Source of the DNA: Diadema antillarum
Lineage: Eukaryota
Direction: 5' to 3'
Assembly: GCF_040938485.1 (NCBI RefSeq)
Contig: NW_027271689.1
Span: forward strand, 1,240,001-1,304,000
DNA length: 64,000 bases
In this document: in pieces, positions 7,987 to 38,259 of the stretch
Layout: every line of letters starts with the position of its first letter
How positions within the stretch are numbered: the first letter of the stretch is position 1
Translations under genes and position numbers: made by a program
The notes under the pieces: generated by a model
What the model was told of the DNA's origin: nothing
The model's input: the letters and a program-made list of their open reading frames with translations, nothing else
Databases searched by the model: none

Positions 7987-8142
7987 NNNNNNNNNNNNNN
8001 NNNNNNNNNNNNNNNNNNNNNNNNNNNNNNNNNNNNNNNNNNNNNNNNNNNNNNNNNNNNNNNNNNNNNNNNNNNNNNNNNNNNNNNNNNNNNNNNNNNN
8101 NNNNNNNNNNNNNNNNNNNNNNNNNNNNNNNNNNNNNNNNNN
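7987..8142. other. Assembly gap (156 N)
   Basis: Run of N. Confidence 1.
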
Positions 8143-27805: not shown

Positions 27806-29741
27806 TTACAGGCGATACACGGGCTCGAAGTTGGCACAGCCGGTGACTCTCCGAAGGGCGCCTTGTCCCGTCAGAGTCAAATCCATTCGATTGATCTCAC
27901 AGGTGCCGTCTCTAAGGAGATTGAAGGAAAGACACTTGCCTTCGATCAGGCAGAGCGTCGAGCACGACACGGTGGTCATAGCATGGGCCTTTCTCACCAC
28001 GTGGCCTGTTAGACAGAAGTTGATCGTCAGTCGTCTCACTTCGAACGAAGTCACCAAGTTCTTTCCGGAAAGCTCTGTAAAACCAGCAATATTTGACATG
28101 AACATATATGGTTTTTTTTTCTCCACTATCCCAAGCCAAGACGAAGTATCTAAAGTTTGTGTATTTCATTAGGCCCTCCTTATCTATCTTATTTCTATCC
28201 ATCTCTTTATATAATCCATCCTTAAATACATACAGGTCAAGTCTATGAAATACCTATCACATTAACTCTCATACTGTTTATTTCATTTTCAACGTTATTA
28301 TTGTTATCATTATTATCATTATATTATTAGCAGTAGTACAAGTAGTAGTACAAGAAGTGGTCTTCGTGATAGTAGTATCATAATTATTTTTAAGGTTTAC
28401 GGACTTTATCGACTTCTGACACCTGACACCTGACATCTCTTACATGTAATTAACTATTTTATTATCAGCCTCAATATTTTGTCTTCTTGTAATTTTACGC
28501 GAGACTGAGTGGATGTCTAGCTGCTGAGAGATATTTGACCAGCCCTGATCACACTGATGATATCAACGGCTACATTTCTTTATTCCGAAGGTTCATTAAT
28601 CCGGAGGATCGTTAATCCGAAAATGAAGAAAAGTTCGTTATCCCGAAGTTTCTTTAATCCGAATATGAAATACGGTTCGTACTTCTTTATATAGTATGCA
28701 TCTCTCTCTTCTCTCATTTTCATTTGACGATTAACAAACCTTGAGGTTTAATTTTCAGATTAATGAACCTTGAACAACGAACATCATCCGAAATCAATAT
28801 CCTGCATCTACTATACACATACTCGCACGCCCACACACGATACCTACTCACCTGCTACTTTCTGACACATCGTGTAATGATAGCTGGCTGGATGATCATC
28901 CGAGGTTACCAGGGTTTGGGTGTTGAGGACCAAGGATGCGGCTAAGCTCTCGTTTATACTGGGCGTCTCATGGGCCCAGCCTAAAGAGAAGAAGTACGTC
29001 GCACACAGAAAGCAGTGGGGATGAATGCAATATCAAAATGTCAAAATAATGGATAGACTAAGGAGGTATCACACATATACATTGGATGCACTGATAGCAA
29101 TTGGAACTTTGGGCTTACGCTTTACGACAGGTAAGAAGACAGCTGCAGAAATTGGTTAGCGTGAAGAGGGCAAGCAAAGAAAGAATAAGAGAGAAGAAAG
29201 AGAGACAGAAAGGTAAGGAGAGAGTGTTTGTGAGGAACAGAAATTACGTACAATTTATTCACATGGATGATTGCGAATAGAATTATCACCGTTAATAGAA
29301 TTATTTGACACTACTTTTTTATCCTACACACGAAATTACAACAGACACGTACATTCGGAAATTCAATGGAGAAATATACAGCTTTCTTTGTATAGATTTA
29401 CATGCGTTACTTTTGTCACTGAAGAAAGTGAGATTTATGTTTATACATTATTTCATTGTGAAAAAAACCCCCGGAATAAATTTGAACTGAACTGAACTGA
29501 ACTGAACAGCTTGAGTAACGCCGAAATGTAGAATACACTAACACACGTGCATTTGTGCATTCTTGTTATAATGTGAAAATACTTGATATCATCAAGGAGC
29601 TATATATTCATTCTAATTAACTTGTTGTAGTTAAGCGTTTAAAGGGGCAGCCCATGTGTATCCTGAATGTATAAAAACTAAGTCTAAAATTTTAAACGAT
29701 GTATATCACGAACTTGCATCAGAAGTAGAAATATGTATATA

Positions 29742-29810
<69 letters not shown>

Positions 29811-30214
29811 TGATTATATATGGATGTTATTGACTTGAACGATAATCCGCACTTTTTTATCTTTTGATATAAGCATTAATCTTTCTTTCCTTTATGATTA
29901 TCTTTTGATGGGCCTAGTAAGATTATTCTTACTACATGTACTCTGGTGCAGTGTTTTGTCGTTAACCTGTTGGTGGTTTATTTCGTAAATGTTATTGTGC
30001 ATTTAGATTTGTGTAAGTCATGTATCTGGGTCTTTCAATACTTCTTTATGACTTTAATTTTGCATTATCATGTTTGGTCAAATGTCAAGAAAGAGGATCA
30101 TTATATTAAGTGATGTGTAGAGCTGAGTATTAATTCTGTTTCTCTTTGTCAGAAACAGCAACCTTTCTTATTTGGATCATGTGTGTGTATGTGTGTGTGT
30201 GTGTGTGTATGTGT

Positions 30215-30253
<39 letters not shown>

Positions 30254-31537
30254 GTTGATTGATCGTTTTATTTGAGGTTTAGCGTTTAGTAGCTCGAGAA
30301 GGTATCATGACGATATTCCAGAATAGAAAATGGGAAGGGAATCGTTTTCATTATCAATTAAAATACCATAATACATGCAAAACAAACTAGCAAACAAACA
30401 AACATACGACATATTAGCTCAAGATTATCAAATAATTATGGCAGATACAATTTTCGTTATTTAGACAAAATGTAGGTGATAATGATGTGACCCACTTGCA
30501 AGTGAATCGGGTATGACACGATAGCATACCTTGAAAAATCTCCTTGTCGTCAACGCAACTCCACGTTTTCGTACCCTTTGCACGCCTACAGCCGAGCCAT
30601 ATATTTTTGAGAACATTGGACGGTTGCAGTGCCAGACGGCTCAAGAAATAAACCTGGCGTCGGGAATGAGCGGTAACCAAGTCTCCACCTACCGACTGGC
30701 AAAATGCGAGCGCATCTGACCACTGCGACACGCCTTTTTCCTTAGAGTAGCAGTAGCCATCCCAATATGTCCAGTCGGCTGGACACGCCGGCGATTCTAC
30801 GGAATAAAATGTTTCATTCGGAGAGCGCTTCTCACTGTTGTTTTCATATCGTGATGTCCAGTATAATAATACTATACAAAGAATGATGAAAACTGACGTA
30901 AAAATTCATTAAAATGCGAAAAGTCATCACAAGACTTTAAAGACCAACATAATAATATGGCAAGATCTTTCTATAAACTTGGGATGGGATGATTTAACAA
31001 ACAAGGAAGACACAACGAAATTTTTTGCTGTCACTATGAGCAGATGAGGGTATCAAAATGTTACGTTCTAAATGATATTTATGAGTGTGGTTATAAAACT
31101 TAAATCTGGCTCGACGTGAACGTTTCTCACTCAAAAAGGAATAGGTTTCAACGCATTTGCCTTTCCCAGTTTTCTAATTTTGATTTTTTTTTTTCTGACA
31201 GTGGTTTTACAGTGTGACGTCCAACATTTCCCTGTAGTCATGATGCGACCAATCAATGGCTTCCTGCTCGGAAATATTTTTCATCAATCTTTAGTCATTG
31301 CACGCTGCCTAAACTTGGAGGAAGATATCTTTCAGAGCGATACAATCAATTTCAGGATTGAGTGCCGGGAACACCAGAAAGAATGGAAATGTCCAACTTT
31401 TAATAGGATCACTTTATCAACTCAGGTTTAGAAACGTGTCTTTCTCTTTCATTCCACTCACCCGACAAGTCTGCAGCCGACACTATGCCCATAGATGTGG
31501 TCAGGATGACGAAGAATGCCTTACAGATATCGGACAT
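27806..31537 (-). CDS. Secreted C-type lectin-like domain + PAN/apple domain protein, 246 aa
   Basis: Exons 31537-31462 (signal peptide MSDICKAFFVILTTSMGIVSA, GTGAGT donor), 30796-30530 (CPADWTYWDGYCY..WSDALAFCQSVGGDLV..IWLGC), 28980-28852 (GWAHETPS..YTMCQK) and 28074-27806 (CLTGHVVRK..SCSTLCLIEGKCLSFNL..TCEIN..GC, TAA). All three introns are phase 1; total 741 nt. Confidence 0.88.
28570..28800. repeat. Dispersed repeat with tandem TTCGTTAATCCGAA-type subrepeats, in the lectin gene intron
   Basis: Repeated GGTTCATTAATCCG / TTCGTTATCCCGAA motifs; a related copy lies at about 35800-36170. Confidence 0.45.
29733..29805. repeat. (TA)n microsatellite
   Basis: Direct read. Confidence 0.95.
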
Positions 31538-32802
31538 ATTTTGTTTTCTGTTCCTCTGCGCGAAGCTCTGCAACTCGTTAAAAAGAAAAATAAGAAGCCT
31601 TGTTGGTAAATCAACAGACTATGCTCAATCAGGTGGTTCTAGTGCCTACTCTCCTCCAGATTCCAAAGCAGGGGAAGCGACTACCATAGGGTCTGGGTGC
31701 GATGCGCTGGAATTATGTCAGTTGGTGGAAAGAGCACTGAATAGTCTGACAAGTCAACAAACTCTGCCATGGGCTTCTGAGGAAAGAGAGAGAGGGAAAT
31801 GCGATCGAAGATTGGCGCGCAAAATGTATTCGTTACCAGGAACGCGGCAGGCATTCAGCTTGCGTCTGACGCTAGTGCCATAATTATGACAAATGAGTTA
31901 GTTTGCAGTGATCGTATGTCTCCCCATTGTGTAAAGAATGCCATTCCATCTTACAATTGTTATTGCTTTCTGTAAAGTGAGAAAGGAGTCCACGCACAAT
32001 GATGTCCTGCATAAATAGGCTTATTTGATCGATTTCCGATAACCACCTAGCGGTAAAAGAAATATACAAAACACCACCCTTACCCCTTGAAAATGTCCTT
32101 GAAAAACATTGAAATTTCAAATTTATTTCAGTTGATGATCATGTATCTCATAATCTTGTCACATTACAAGAACAATGCGCTGTCCGCTATCATCACTATT
32201 AAACGCTGACTATTTTATACAAGCTATAAGCAGGGAGGTCACCTCCCTGCTACAAGGCGTGCAACCTTCATATGCACAATACTAAACATTGTGTCAGATA
32301 AGTAACAAACAGACAGACAAACAAACGTTTTATGGAGAAATGAAGAAAACAGTTGGCAAGCACCAATAAATATATCGGCAAAATGAATTTGTCTGTCATT
32401 CTTATCACATAATGTCAGGGCCCCATGGAAGACCAGAAGTGACTATCATTGTCATGCACTACTGAAAATGGGCTACCCTCCGTATGTTTTTTTTTCTTTT
32501 CTGGACCTTTATATATGAAATATGCTGATTTTTAATACGGAAATAAAACGAACAAACAAAACACAATGTCACAGGCTAAAAGTTGCCCCAAGTAAGTAAG
32601 GACAGCTCAATCATTACACTAGTGATGTATAGACTAATTGGAGTTGACAAAGTACTGCCCACTTCTCATAATCTGCACCGGGATTGACACGCGATACATT
32701 GTGCAGAGACGTACCAGCAGAATGATCCATGGTTAATGCGCGTGATCACCTCATACAGACTGTTTTAGCTTCGAGGTACATGTACTAGTATCAATTTTTA
32801 AC

Positions 32803-35800
32803 ATGGCGTCAGACATAGAATCGGACGAAGGGGTGATCGCGGCCCTAGTTCGCTTCTTGAACCCTTTCCCTGGAAATTTGGAGGTCCTCATCTGGATCCA
32901 GTCAGCTACAGTTGCTATATCCGTCCTTGCCATTGCTGTGTTGCTGTGGATCTGTTGCCGAGGACGACGATGGAAGGAGCTCGACGTCGAACCCGTGCCC
33001 TTCATGTGTCTCTTCATAGGTCAGTGAGGATTGATAGCGAGATAACAAAACGCAATGTAATCTGCGCGTTATTGTGGAATTGATATTCGTCATAATTATT
33101 TTCCCTATATTTTTCCCCTTTAGATATGGAAAATGTTAGCAACAGTGTTCGCTGTCTCTTAGACTCATAATACCCGTATAATACATTGCAGTTACTATTG
33201 AATCATTAGACATTCTTAATAATCAAATACATATCTATTTTGAAACCTACTCCTTCAGCTATATTATAAACAGTATAGGTCCAACAATCAATTTTCGTAG
33301 GACATTTTCATTTGGCAAATTTCCGCAGGATTGTAAGGTGAAATCAGGTACAATTTTCAACACCCATCGGACATTACATATTATGATTAGAAAACAAAAT
33401 GTTTTGTGGGATTAAAGATCCATTAATTTGCTATTAATGGACAATCGAGTTGAATTATTAATAAAGTCATGCTTTGTTCTCTCCATAATAATGGTGAAAA
33501 ATCTGCACTTCAACTACTAACATGTTCATTACAAACTTACTTATGGATGCTTTTTTATACTGTAATTCTCGTTGCGTTTTTCTTTTCATTCCAGCTTTCC
33601 GGCTCTCTTATAGCGTGTGCTTTCAATTTGCTTAAAAAGTCATTGTTTCAACTGGACCCTTTGGTAGACAGTTCTCCCGCAACATCAGCTGCTTGTATAC
33701 TGATTTATTTTTGTATTTCGCCATGTTACGTGATATGATTTTACACAGGAATAAAGTCATATCGAATCGTATGTCATTAATTCTGTGATGATCAATATAA
33801 GCAACTTTGCTGGTACCTTGTGACCGAAAACAAAAGTAGTACTCCTATACACACAGGTATACGTCAATGTATTCAGTTAACGCAAATCAGTATACTATCT
33901 CTCATAGGCACATGCTTCTTTTGTTGACACATAAGAATAACAGGCAACTCGTCTGGTTTCTTTATACTTCAAGACATAATGTAATTTTTTCCATGCTCGA
34001 TTTAATAGTTTGAAGAGTATAGGCGAAAGTCTGACAGAATTACTAACAACACTCGACTATAATTGTATTAAGTTCAAGATATCCCCATATAAAATGATAA
34101 TTACATGCATAACTACGTGTGTCTGCGTCGTGCATTCGTGTGTATATTAATGTGATACCGGATTCATCCTTTAACCATTAATGTTTTATATGTTCTCCGT
34201 TTGTAATGGCAATATAAACCTTTGTTGAATAGCGTAATGAGGGTTTTTTTGTATAATTTAAAAAGAAGAAAGAAAAGAACGCTGAATCTAAACTACTGCT
34301 CATCTTCTTTCTCTTCGTCTCCTGCTCAGATAGCACATGGCTGGACAGATTGTCTGTTTTTGCATGGCTGAACCGCACGCTCCTGCGTAATAGATGGAAA
34401 ACAGAGCGAGAAATGCTGCTCACTGGAATCAGCGAAATGTGTCAGTCGTCTACGACGCAGCATGTACAACATCCAGTTCTTGTGACGTCATCCGTGAAAA
34501 CAACGCTGGACCTTTTCTTTCGAGTCCAGAAGTACCCCTCTGAGTCGGAGGTTATCGTCACTGCTATCAACGCGTATGATACAATTCAAGTCATCCTCCA
34601 TCATGGCTTACACGTGGTTCCTCTGGACATCGATAAAGATACTCTCTCCCCAAACATAGAGGCATTGCGTCACGTGATCAACGAAAACACAGTGGCCCTT
34701 TTTGTGTCACACCTGTACGGGCGGTTGTCGGACCTGACCCAGATAGCCGATATTGCTCACGAGCACGGGGTTCATTTATTGGAGGACTGTTCCCAAGCTT
34801 GCACCAGCCCCGTGGACAGCGCCAACCCCGAGTCTGATCTGGCCTTCTTCAGTTTTGACACCATTCACCCCTGTACGGCACATGGCGGCGCCATAACCAG
34901 AGTCAAGGACAAATATCTCCTGGCCAAAATGAAGGAACTGCACGAGACTTATCCAGTCGGCTCTGAAGTGAAGTATGTGGAGAACATACTGAAAACTTCC
35001 GTGGTGGCACTGACTCTCAACCATCCGCGGTTCACCAAACTCACCATGTTGTTGTTGAGACCGTTCAAGGTTGACCTCAAGGAGAAGGCAAATGCGTTCC
35101 TAACAGCGCCCCCACAGGCTGGATTGTTACGTCTTCTTCGAGACCAACCTCCAACGGCATTGCTGTTCATGCTACACAGACGGTAAGAACCGATGCATGT
35201 GATAACAAAACAAAAACAACGAATACAATAACAACATAAAATCACTCAAATTCAAGGGTTGATGAAATCTGTTCCATTTAAGATTTGAATCGAATCTGGA
35301 AGAAAATGTGTTAGCATGCAGAAAATGTAGTGTACACCAGAATGTACAGACATAAAAACCAGGGCCTAGGTTTATGATTAACAAGCTCCGTCGTTATACA
35401 TGCATGTTTAGTAGCAGAAATATGATGGTCGAACCAGCCAGGTGAATAACCTGAGAAGTCATAGATTTAGAAAAAAAAAAATGCTCGTACATACAGTGGC
35501 AATCCACAACTTTAAAGGTCTCTGCGATAAATGGTAGACCAAATTGGACTTCTTATTGGAAATAGTAAAAAGACTGCTATTAATCAACGTTTGCGTCTAT
35601 AAAGTGCATTAGATGACGATGACAATAACAGTGAAAAGGATAAAGAGTGCAATGATAAAAGTATGCTCTTGTCATTTTTGTAGCCTCCAGCGCTGTTTTC
35701 CTATGAGAGGGCCCCACCATTGTTCTTGTTCTAGCATTACCACGTACAACTTTTGGGAAGAGAGGAACATTAGCCTACAGTCTACAGTGTATAGCTGGTA

Positions 35801-37595
35801 AACGGATGATGTTCGTCACTCCGACGGTTCATTATTCCGAAACAGACAGATTCTCTACACAAAAGTACCTAGGTGTTCGTTAATGCGAAAATGAACATTT
35901 TAGGGTACGTTAATCCGAATATTTTGTGGCATTATTCCGAAAGTTCGGTTTTCATCCGAAAATGAGTTCAGATTCGTTATTCCGAAAATGGGAAACAATA
36001 TGTGTACTCTAACGAACCTTCGGAATTATGAAACTTATTTCATTTTTGCATTAACCAGCCGTCGGAATAACGAACTTATTTATCATTTTATTCAGACTAA
36101 CGAAGCTTCAAAGAAACGAGCCTTAGAACCTTGGGAATAACAAATCTTCAGAATAACGAATTGTAAGGGTACCGCGGGTGGGATTCAAACCCAGGACATT
36201 ATTGCTGGAACAATAATTGATCAAGAATCTCGTCTACTGTGACCCAAAGGTTGTTCTTTAATCAGTATTACACGTTTCCTATTAGGTGTTTGTCATAAAA
36301 TGTGACCCTGTATATGACTATACACCATTATGATGTTAAAATTATTGATAATAAACTTGTTATCGATCTTTGCACATGACTGATGTAGGTTGAAAAATTT
36401 CGATCCGACCGATTTCGACAAGTCACGAGAGACAGGGGACTACGTGTCGGAGAGGATGCCGCAGGTTGCGGGGCAGATTGGCATGAAGGCCCTGGTGAGA
36501 GGTTACTGGCTCTATCCTATTCTAGTGGTAAGTGGTAAAATACACGATCTACAAAATCACACATTCTGCCCTGCCTTGACATAACAAATCAAGTTTAAAA
36601 AAATGTTATGTTTCTTATAAATGAATAATAATTATCAGTAGAATATAATATTTTTTTTAACCTAAAGATTGGTATCAATGCAATTATTATGATGTTTTGA
36701 CGAAGGTATTTTCAGTAAGATTCGTGTTTCTGCTCAAACGTTAATGTTCAAGTATATCAAGTGAAGTCCTATTTAAAGGCAGTAATAACCCGGATTTTGA
36801 TGAGACATTGTATGTCACCGCGCTTCTTCCTGTCAAATGAGGACAGCATGATTTCATTGATTGTCTGTCAGCATGATTGTCTCTTTCACACAGAGATATG
36901 ATTTCGATTGTGGTAATCAGAAAGACTGCTCAGTCAATTCCAATTGAATCAATGGCAACATCGTTAAAAGATGATAATATGGTAAGAGTGATAATATCGT
37001 AATTAAGCTGTAATACTCTATCCGCCTGCACTTTGTCTTCTTTGGTATCCGTATAATCACTTAAAGTTTCAGACTACATCCCCGTTCTATTTGTGCCGTT
37101 ATAATGCAGAATGATCCGGACGAAGTTGTACGTCGCTTAAATCTTCTGGGGATCGAGGCAGCGAGGCAAGTAACTCAGTTGACCCTAATCACGGCTCCTG
37201 CAACTCAAAGTTCCGTGTCTGACTCGGTTGAACCTCCTCTCATGGGAGTGGATTCCAGCCAATGTCCACTTACCACAGCCACCTTCATCATTGACCACGT
37301 CGTCTACCTGCCCGTCCACAAGCGCGTCGCGCGACATCACCTTGAGCAGGTCTGCCTCGCCGTTGAGATCGTTGTCAACAAGCTGGCCATACTAAAACGC
37401 TACCGAGCCAGACTAAAGGACGCCGCCTCGTCGGCGCGAGGATCGCACGAAGTCTCAAACTCTGGTCCGTATGGTCCAGTCGCCTCTCGGAAGACCAAGG
37501 ATTCGAATCGTAGACGCACTGTTTCCTTCAATCCCAGCGTCAAGATGTTCGCCCAAGTACCAGCTTCCCAAACAGAAGGACCCAAGTCAACATGA
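32803..37595 (+). CDS. DegT/DnrJ/EryC1/StrS-family (fold type I PLP) aminotransferase homologue with N-terminal transmembrane anchor, 564 aa; catalytic Lys replaced by His
   Basis: Exons 32803-33019, 34330-35182, 36389-36527 and 37110-37595 (TGA), phases 1, 2, 0. Family motifs: EVIVTAIN..TIQVILHHGLHVVPLDIDKDTL..ALRHVINENTVALFVSHLYG..IADIAHEHGVHLLEDCSQA, FSFDTIHPCTAHGG, WLYPI, YLPVH. Confidence 0.88.
35800..36170. repeat. Dispersed repeat of the same TTCGTTATTCCGAA family, in a DegT-like gene intron
   Basis: Inverted arrays of TTATTCCGAA / TTCGGAATAACGAA motifs. Confidence 0.45.
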
Positions 37596-38259
37596 TCCAT
37601 TCTAAAGTTCCGTTTACTTCCTCGGGACGACTACCAGTTTTCAAGATCATTAGTAATGGAGTATTGAGAATTAAACTTTATGGGCATAAAGTGTTATCTT
37701 GTTATGTCAATACAGAAATATTCCTTCCAGTTACAAATACACAGCTACTGAAAATTATTTTCATCTTTGAGCAGTGAACAGTTTATAATGTGAATCTGAT
37801 ATGCATACCTCTGCAGCCACAGCCCCTGGTTTGATGTAAGCGTATTAACTGATTAATGTTTTATACTCCTTTTAATGTGATATCTAGATTCTTTTAAACC
37901 ATCGGTGTCAGGACATCGCATTAACTTCATTTTCCCTCTTCATTTCCATTTCATCATTCGGTCGTATCATCGCCGTGTCATAGGGGTAGGTTTGCCTTGT
38001 CATATAGATATCAAAGCCGGCAGCAGTTCCAGAATAATTCGCATGTGATCACGTCTCTTAGACAAAATTGTGTTCGTGCCCACTGTTATCCTGAAACGCC
38101 ATGCAACAACACATGTGTCACAAAAAATCATAGCCTGCCATTCGATTATGTAAATAACGACAAGCATACATGCAAGGGTGTTTCACAATTATTGAATTGT
38201 ACCACCATACTATTTTAATGATGATGTACGCACAACGACGGAACTATGTATTAGCTATA

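Follow-up and report, generated by a model that had tools for sequence, protein, structure and literature searches.

An echinoderm DegT-like protein without the Schiff-base lysine: a putative membrane-tethered pseudo-aminotransferase

Introduction

The DegT/DnrJ/EryC1/StrS family (Pfam PF01041) includes the sugar aminotransferases ArnB, PseC, WbpE and perosamine synthase, pyridoxal phosphate (PLP) enzymes with a Schiff-base Lys. DegT-family enzymes are dimers with interface active sites, as seen in the structures of ArnB, PseC and WbpE. Here, we analyze a DegT-like gene of the sea urchin Diadema antillarum, located at 32803-37595 on the plus strand of a 64,000-nucleotide stretch of contig NW_027271689.1 (assembly GCF_040938485.1, positions 1,240,001 to 1,304,000), which as a whole is referred to as the window. 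The encoded protein has in common with the classical DegT sugar aminotransferases the Pfam family, the predicted two-domain fold, and the ED..Q and SF motifs, but differs from them in the absence of the Schiff-base Lys, in being the product of a eukaryotic, intron-containing gene, and in its added N- and C-terminal segments.

Replacement of this Lys has a precedent within the family. ColD, E1 (RfbH, DdhC) and SpnQ are 3-dehydratases of the same DegT fold, dependent on pyridoxamine phosphate (PMP), in which His, as a catalytic residue, takes the place of the catalytic Lys (PMC8987622); His also occupies this column in Diadema. A His at the Lys position is therefore in itself no evidence of a dead enzyme, a point overlooked in the initial annotation of this DNA. 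The His of the dehydratases is an invariant, catalytic residue, whereas the corresponding site varies among His, Tyr, Gln and Arg in the clade described below, and the Diadema protein is an animal protein with a predicted membrane anchor.

To our knowledge, few PLP enzymes have a conserved paralogue that is catalytically dead, the textbook case being SPTLC1. SPTLC1/LCB1 and the Diadema protein have in common a fold-type-I PLP fold, the lack of the Schiff-base Lys, an N-terminal anchor (predicted in Diadema) with a cytosolic domain, maintenance under selection, and a Lys-bearing paralogue in the same genome. Since SPTLC1 belongs to the alpha-oxoamine synthase family, it is an analogue and not a homologue of the Diadema protein. 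Selected PLP paralogues without the Lys are already known from SPTLC1; one that belongs to the DegT family, is predicted to be membrane-anchored and is echinoderm-wide would be new. Our literature search found no paper on this DegT-like family in animals or on the Strongylocentrotus purpuratus locus, and the database names of family members are all "uncharacterized" or generic.

From the gene structure, residue states, clade membership, conservation, paralogue and targeting motifs, which are read directly, we infer a loss of catalysis, a topology and a binding role: the gene probably encodes an old, conserved echinoderm pseudo-aminotransferase, tethered to a membrane and facing the cytosol, which would form no internal aldimine and carry out no transaminase turnover. 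A pseudoenzyme or non-catalytic subunit had been proposed in the initial annotation, and the proposal is supported by orthologues that also lack the Lys, their constraint, the absence of a compensating Lys, a Lys-bearing paralogue and a conserved anchor. A non-catalytic binding role fits because the Lys and subfamily-invariant residues have been lost while the fold, more than 100 residues and new targeting elements are conserved. If true, the protein would be an independent example of a dead PLP paralogue, in the DegT family and in an animal, with the signature of a lost catalytic residue and peroxisomal signal and a gained membrane anchor and regulatory-looking tail. The gene would be old, since crinoids share it with sea urchins, animals well suited to experiments. 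It would also draw attention to the parent family of widespread, uncharacterised DegT-like proteins ending in -SKL, for which microbial fusions point to glycerolipid or ether-lipid chemistry.

Fold and active-site residues of the Diadema protein

Exon 2 of the gene matches PF01041 with 96 bits over profile positions 40-200, and the full protein with 99 bits, relative to a gathering cut-off of 19.8 bits. The profile match is confined to the large domain. At E <= 1e-3, 49 solved DegT-family sequences match the Diadema protein (phmmer), and it scores far below every curated NCBIfam equivalog cut-off tried. An AlphaFold2 (AF2) model has a mean predicted local distance difference test (pLDDT) score of 68, with most of the core at 80-94; it contains helices at residues 26-53 and 478-516, and a disordered tail with pLDDT <50 from residue 514. 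Foldseek comparison of the model with ArnB, perosamine synthase, WbpE and PseC gave a probability of 1.00 and target-normalised template modelling (TM) scores of 0.66-0.74 over alignments of ~430-470 columns. From the model and these matches, the whole two-domain, fold-type-I (aspartate aminotransferase-like) fold is predicted to be retained.

The EDCSQA motif (residues 224-229, 34782-34799) is intact and contains Asp225 (34785-34787), the pyridine-nitrogen-binding Asp of the family; both Glu224 and Asp225 are invariant across all aligned relatives. The Schiff-base Lys column falls within FSFDTIHPCTAHGG (residues 246-259, 34848-34889), where the codon CAC (34866-34868), two changes from AAA or AAG, encodes His252. 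Both residue states had been described from the sequence beforehand and are confirmed here. His252 occupies the Lys column without gaps in three independent alignments, namely phmmer against solved DegT enzymes, MAFFT and hmmalign, and thus sits exactly at this position. In the phmmer alignment with HCAN_0200 (7n63), His252 of the Diadema motif FSFDTIH is paired with the Lys of FSFYPGKN.

A clade of echinoderm proteins without the lysine

A word-based search with exon 2 identified S. purpuratus LOC100888326 (59% identity), and a search with the latter identified orthologue-like proteins in Lytechinus pictus, the crinoid Antedon mediterranea and two Logan sequences, along with more distant sea star and brittle star proteins. 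The Lys column holds His in Diadema, Tyr in S. purpuratus and L. pictus, Gln in Antedon and Arg in the two Logan sequences; Acanthaster, Amphiura and others have Lys. The loss thus extends beyond one allele to two other sea urchins, a crinoid and two Logan relatives, and the particular significance first given to His is not borne out by a position that reads H/Y/Y/Q/R/R across the clade. Alignment of the clade against the Lys-bearing branch revealed no replacement Lys conserved only in the former, which speaks against another active-site Lys.

When 1.84 billion representatives were searched with a profile, 28755 matches were obtained, of which the best 150 all scored >274 bits. When these 150 were aligned together with the earlier matches using hmmalign, 149 of the 157 relatives proved to have Lys, set in a highly regular SFGxIKxxTAxGG motif. 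A separate loss was seen in a Joint Genome Institute (JGI) metagenome protein of 438 amino acids (P0012), in which Lys is independently replaced by Arg; this very divergent protein ends in -SKI and is separated from the echinoderm clade, on a branch of length 4.1.

To place these proteins, a phylogeny of 44 sequences with five microbial outgroups was constructed using IQ-TREE. The six Lys-less echinoderm sequences are monophyletic with support of 100/100, the crinoid branching off first, followed by the two Arg-type sequences and then by Diadema with the two camarodont urchins. The clade lies among deuterostome Lys-bearing sequences, adjoining the echinoderm Lys-bearing clade (support 93/72). 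Forcing all echinoderm sequences into one group lowers the log-likelihood by 3.4 units, and the approximately unbiased (AU) test does not reject that grouping (p = 0.24), so that a gene duplication in the echinoderm stem would fit the data. The stem branch of the Lys-less clade is long (0.65), and its crown branches are comparable in length to those in the Lys-bearing paralogues, a pattern that suggests a burst of change followed by constraint.

An alignment of 38 Lys-bearing animal proteins has 79 columns conserved at >=90%; the Lys-less clade retains 41 of these in full and departs from the other 38, the changes being concentrated in the family motifs. The invariant Arg of LSVRT is replaced by Lys or Asn; AINIP, RxFP and GATQL are changed; and Asn of RNYWLFP is replaced by Gly in all members. 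In EDCAExFxG, Ala is replaced by Ser in all six sequences and Glu by Gln or Leu. In FSFGxIK, the phosphate-binding Ser is replaced by Asn or Asp in four of the six members, in addition to the replacement of Lys by His, Tyr, Gln or Arg.

Predicted membrane anchor and C-terminal tail

Exon 1 encodes a predicted transmembrane signal-anchor of 22 hydrophobic residues (residues 29-50, 32887-32952), with a maximal Kyte-Doolittle 19-mer value of 2.45. It is followed directly by two Cys and the basic cluster RGRRWK (residues 51-58, 32953-32976). These elements had been pointed out before; they are present, and the anchor is conserved across the clade members examined. Strong hydrophobic 19-mers also occur in L. 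pictus (2.27) and Antedon (2.68), as compared with values of <=1.63 in all Lys-bearing relatives examined. The anchor of the L. pictus orthologue is likewise followed by two Cys and a basic cluster (CCRRR), and that of Antedon by a single Cys (RCLR). The N-terminal flank of the Diadema anchor has a net charge of -4 and the following 8 residues a charge of +4; because of this acidic N-flank and basic C-flank, the positive-inside rule predicts that the short N-terminus is outside and the enzyme-like domain cytosolic. Lipidation of the juxtamembrane Cys, such as palmitoylation, is a conjecture.

The tail contains the motifs GPYGP (residues 522-526) and RRRTVSF (residues 537-543), which lie within 37464-37529 and are kept in the Lys-less orthologues. 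In the MAFFT alignment, neither GPYGP nor the basic-x-x-V-S/T motif is found in Lys-bearing proteins. RRRTVSF (37509-37529) fits the basophilic-kinase site R-x-R-x-x-S, and in Diadema, Antedon and one Logan sequence the motif is also compatible with an RVxF-like docking pattern; the Phe is not retained in camarodont urchins. The motif may be a basophilic-kinase or docking site.

The Diadema protein ends in ...GPKST, which is not a type 1 peroxisomal targeting signal (PTS1). With PTS1 defined as [SAC][KRH][LM] at the C-terminus, mostly -SKL, a canonical signal is present in none of five Lys-less clade members, versus 37 of 44 named Lys-bearing animal proteins.

The lysine-bearing paralogue and its subfamily

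A search of the genome for a Lys-retaining paralogue had been suggested at the outset. Such a gene was found on another Diadema contig, JBFRCO010000273.1 (L004), encoding a protein (P0043) with the motif SFGIIK. Introns 2 (...HR|R, phase 2) and 3 (...LV|(N/S)DP, phase 0) are at identical places and phases in the two Diadema genes, which are therefore true genomic paralogues. As annotated, P0043 comprises 682 amino acids and has an odd end, ...GHL. Reading its last exon on in frame (L004:15088-15300) gives ...YIIDHVVYLPVHK...GVRSKL-stop, including the conserved last block; the deposited protein therefore seems mis-spliced at the 3' end, and the true Diadema Lys-bearing protein would end in -SKL, like its L. 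pictus and Lytechinus variegatus orthologues.

The Lys-bearing gene is also present in L. pictus (P0038), L. variegatus (P0182), S. purpuratus (P0196) and Antedon (P0039); loci of the Lys-bearing paralogue are LOC115917963 in S. purpuratus and LOC129258877 in L. pictus. Both genes, Lys-less and Lys-bearing, occur in Diadema, S. purpuratus, L. pictus and Antedon. In sea stars and the brittle star, only the Lys-bearing gene came up when the Acanthaster protein was used as query. The sea-urchin Lys-bearing proteins (P0038, P0182, P0196, P0043 and P0036) are 680-810 amino acids long, owing to a disordered insertion, rich in Ser and Pro and ~250-300 residues in length, ahead of the last conserved block; the sea-star, brittle-star and crinoid orthologues (432-477 amino acids) have no such insertion.

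Further Lys-bearing relatives, all named "uncharacterized", were found in hemichordates, cephalochordates, tunicates, molluscs, annelids, nemerteans, a centipede, rotifers and an octocoral, and the subfamily is apparently absent among the vertebrate matches. The Lys-bearing animal proteins (Acanthaster LOC110983304, Saccoglossus LOC100367139, and those of Branchiostoma, molluscs, annelids and rotifers) are direct relatives of the Diadema Lys-less protein, with 35-45% identity over the whole domain, a shared VPYxCLYID N-terminal motif and, for the Diadema member, shared intron positions; unlike it, they have SFGxIK with Lys, no anchor and an -SKL end. The Lys-bearing subfamily thus appears widespread in marine invertebrates and is usually predicted to be targeted to peroxisomes. 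No curated NCBIfam equivalog comes near its cut-off, so the subfamily does not belong to the named sugar aminotransferases.

Close microbial relatives are repeatedly fused to other domains. The partners are DAO and DAO_C, of the alpha-glycerophosphate-oxidase type; a PlsC/GPAT-type (PlsC/DHAPAT-type) acyltransferase; FAD_binding_4; and ACBP with a fatty-acyl-CoA-reductase-type NAD_binding_4, with or without the acyltransferase. These fused proteins (P0086-P0089, P0119, P0139, P0157, P0172, P0275 and P0279) are the long members among the closest relatives. The genes surrounding three microbial members spoke neither for nor against a particular function. An aminotransferase acting on dihydroxyacetone phosphate (DHAP) has been described in rhizobitoxine biosynthesis, where it yields serinol phosphate (PMC3222319). 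The domain fusions and the animal -SKL ends make the keto group of DHAP or acyl-/alkyl-DHAP a candidate substrate, and suggest as a lead that the Lys-bearing subfamily may comprise peroxisomal DHAP or acyl/alkyl-DHAP aminotransferases.

Selection and expression

Within the Lys-less clade, 117 columns are invariant (>=4 sequences including the crinoid). Comparison of coding sequences was based on one pair, the Arg-type members L002 and L003, for which the non-synonymous divergence (dN) is 0.19 and the synonymous divergence (dS) is saturated (1.7 by LWL85, no value by NG86 and YN00). Neutral decay, against which conservation and dN/dS were to be checked, is not seen: with 117 invariant columns and dN far below dS, the clade is under purifying selection. 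In exon 1, among the differences listed relative to a ~5-6% diverged relative, at least 9 codon changes are non-synonymous and at least 3 synonymous. Nearly all of the non-synonymous changes exchange one hydrophobic residue for another within the anchor, and those in the Cys codons are all synonymous, which is the usual pattern for a simple membrane anchor.

Evidence of expression was obtained for an orthologue. On contig L002 (run SRR32120647), the orthologue lacks introns 2 and 3; the contig starts within intron 1, with a pyrimidine tract and CAG before exon 2 in the same phase as in Diadema. L003, which stems from a related organism, contains unspliced exon 2 with matching acceptor and donor sites. 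Because introns 2 and 3 are gone while the intron-1 acceptor is retained, L002 is best read as a partly processed transcript and is evidence for transcription and splicing of a clade member. Given their place on the tree as sister to the echinoids, L002 and L003 may come from holothurians. The end of contig L003 (L003:1145-1174, CTGTCTCTTATACACATCT) is what we take to be a Nextera-type adapter, and therefore library sequence and not genome.

Interpretation

The preferred reading can be laid out as a series of proposed steps. A DegT-like aminotransferase gene would have been duplicated, at a time compatible with the echinoderm stem. One copy would have lost the Schiff-base Lys, with about half of the near-invariant residues altered and the Lys site then drifting to Gln, Arg, His or Tyr. 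The same copy would have lost its C-terminal -SKL and gained an N-terminal signal-anchor with the juxtamembrane Cys/basic cluster, as well as a new C-terminal helix and a disordered tail with the conserved basic-Ser motif. Throughout, the two-domain fold-type-I fold would have been kept and purifying selection maintained, and the product may act as a scaffold, regulator or ligand holder in the pathway of the active sister enzyme.

Several observations weigh against the absence of catalysis or soften the case for a conserved function. The Lys column is followed by an intact T-x-x-GG turn, and Asp225 and Gln228 are retained as well; Lys-to-Ala mutants of ArnB, WbpE and perosamine synthase keep PLP in crystals, according to the titles of the structure entries. 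The protein may therefore still bind the cofactor non-covalently or an external aldimine, and may carry out some chemistry. Position 252 is in all cases occupied by a residue that is large and polar (His, Tyr, Gln or Arg), never small or hydrophobic, which could reflect some retained role. The pLDDT of the AF2 model is just moderate. The dN/dS of ~0.1 or less for the L002/L003 pair is a rough bound because dS is saturated. Finally, three public runs holding the stretch, which are genomic contigs of a related species, showed no spliced joints; as their contigs enter the introns, these runs are uninformative on expression of the Diadema gene.

The retained Asp and Gln of the ED..Q motif are also what an active enzyme of the ColD/E1/SpnQ kind would show, with His252 as catalytic acid/base in a dehydratase-type or other PMP-dependent reaction. 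Further in favor of such an enzyme, phmmer pairs His252 with the first His of the E1 active-site motif (3bcx/3bb8), ColD is also among the matches, and the dehydratases have the same fold with a catalytic His in this position. However, the His is confined to Diadema, and its lineage-specific replacement by Tyr, Tyr, Gln, Arg and Arg in the orthologues argues against a catalytic His of this type. The protein is also nested in the tree among animal Lys-bearing aminotransferase-like proteins and not dehydratases, it scores 44.8 bits with the NCBIfam RfbH (E1-type) model versus a cut-off of 423, and the phosphate-binding Ser of the SF motif is Asn or Asp in four clade members. With the His not conserved and the protein outside the dehydratase branch, we rejected a ColD/E1-type catalytic His as the leading explanation and regard it as improbable. 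Loss of function altogether, through decay of the gene, allele-specific damage or an annotation artefact, would be in keeping with the preponderance of non-synonymous changes listed for exon 1 and with the lack of RNA evidence for the Diadema gene in the three runs. It is very hard to reconcile with an intact frame of 564 codons over four exons with canonical splice sites, the same architecture in a crinoid and sea urchins, the 117 invariant columns and low dN, the near-restriction of the non-synonymous exon 1 changes to hydrophobic swaps within the anchor, and the spliced transcript of an orthologue, and we consider it extremely improbable.

A special case of the non-catalytic reading is an arrangement like that of SPTLC1/LCB1, in which the Lys-less protein would be an obligate heterodimer partner, contributing half of a shared active site and tethering the Lys-bearing paralogue. 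It draws on the dimeric state of DegT enzymes with their active sites at the interface, on the presence of a Lys-bearing gene in every species shown to have the Lys-less one, on the resemblance of the N-terminal anchor and cytosolic domain to those of SPTLC1, and on the retention in the Lys-less clade of 41 of the 79 conserved columns, which are thus common to both branches. The two proteins are however not obviously in one compartment, given their differing targeting signals: the Lys-bearing paralogues end in -SKL, a signal for the peroxisomal matrix, and the Lys-less protein has no PTS1 and a predicted cytosol-facing anchor, whereas SPTLC1 and SPTLC2 are both in the membrane of the endoplasmic reticulum (ER). 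The Lys-bearing gene is moreover nearly universal in marine invertebrates, so co-occurrence says little, and since it was found alone in sea stars and the brittle star, the enzyme can do without a Lys-less partner. An obligate heterodimer therefore seems rather unlikely. A more specific version would have the Lys-bearing enzyme make serinol-phosphate-type amino (ether) lipids from the C2 keto group of DHAP-type substrates, with the Lys-less paralogue as non-catalytic partner or gatekeeper on the cytosolic face of the peroxisome or ER. There, it might capture the active enzyme before import, or hold a cofactor-substrate adduct. If true, an arrangement like that of SPT would have evolved a second time, independently, in another PLP family; at present we give this version little credence.

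Gene structure and locus

The gene consists of four exons with GT donors and AG acceptors throughout. Exon 1 (32803-33019, GT donor at 33020) encodes residues 1-72 plus the first base of codon 73, comprising the acidic N-terminus, the membrane anchor, the two juxtamembrane Cys with the basic cluster, and the first part of the family motif, VPFMCLFI|D. Intron 1 (33020-34329, phase 1) is followed by exon 2 (34330-35182), which encodes residues 73-357 (the last in part) and thus the large PLP-type domain of the DegT fold. After intron 2 (35183-36388, phase 2), exon 3 (36389-36527) encodes residues 357-403 and ends with the conserved YWL(Y/F)PILV. Intron 3 (36528-37109, phase 0) precedes exon 4 (37110-37595), which encodes residues 404-564 and the stop codon, covering the remainder of the small domain, the long helix and the disordered tail without PTS1.

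The spliced coding sequence of 1695 nucleotides yields 564 amino acids, identical letter for letter to P0004, "uncharacterized protein [Diadema antillarum]" of assembly GCA_040938485.1. This identity and the canonical splice sites bear out the intact four-exon frame proposed in the initial annotation. The join of exons 1 and 2 is supported by the family motif VP(Y/F)xCL(Y/F)ID, which spans the junction and continues as in Lys-bearing relatives (MAFFT), and the related genes on L002 and L003 have an acceptor at the place and phase of Diadema intron 1. No second copy of the protein was found by tblastn in the whole window. The remaining open reading frames at 32500-38000 on both strands are of <=98 amino acids, and are intronic or out of frame over the exons.

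Within 10 kb, the only called neighbor is a minus-strand gene at ~27806-31537, with a 246-amino acid product that has a weak C-type lectin match; there are no gene calls in the 10 kb downstream of the DegT-like gene. Intron 2 contains a high-copy interspersed repeat at ~35730-36250 that itself includes short CGGAATAACGAA-type repeats. Contig depth over it, taken from three genomic runs for a related species, ranges from hundreds to ~21500, compared with ~20-50 in the flanks, and many alternative joints occur. The sole N stretch of the window is at 7987-8142.

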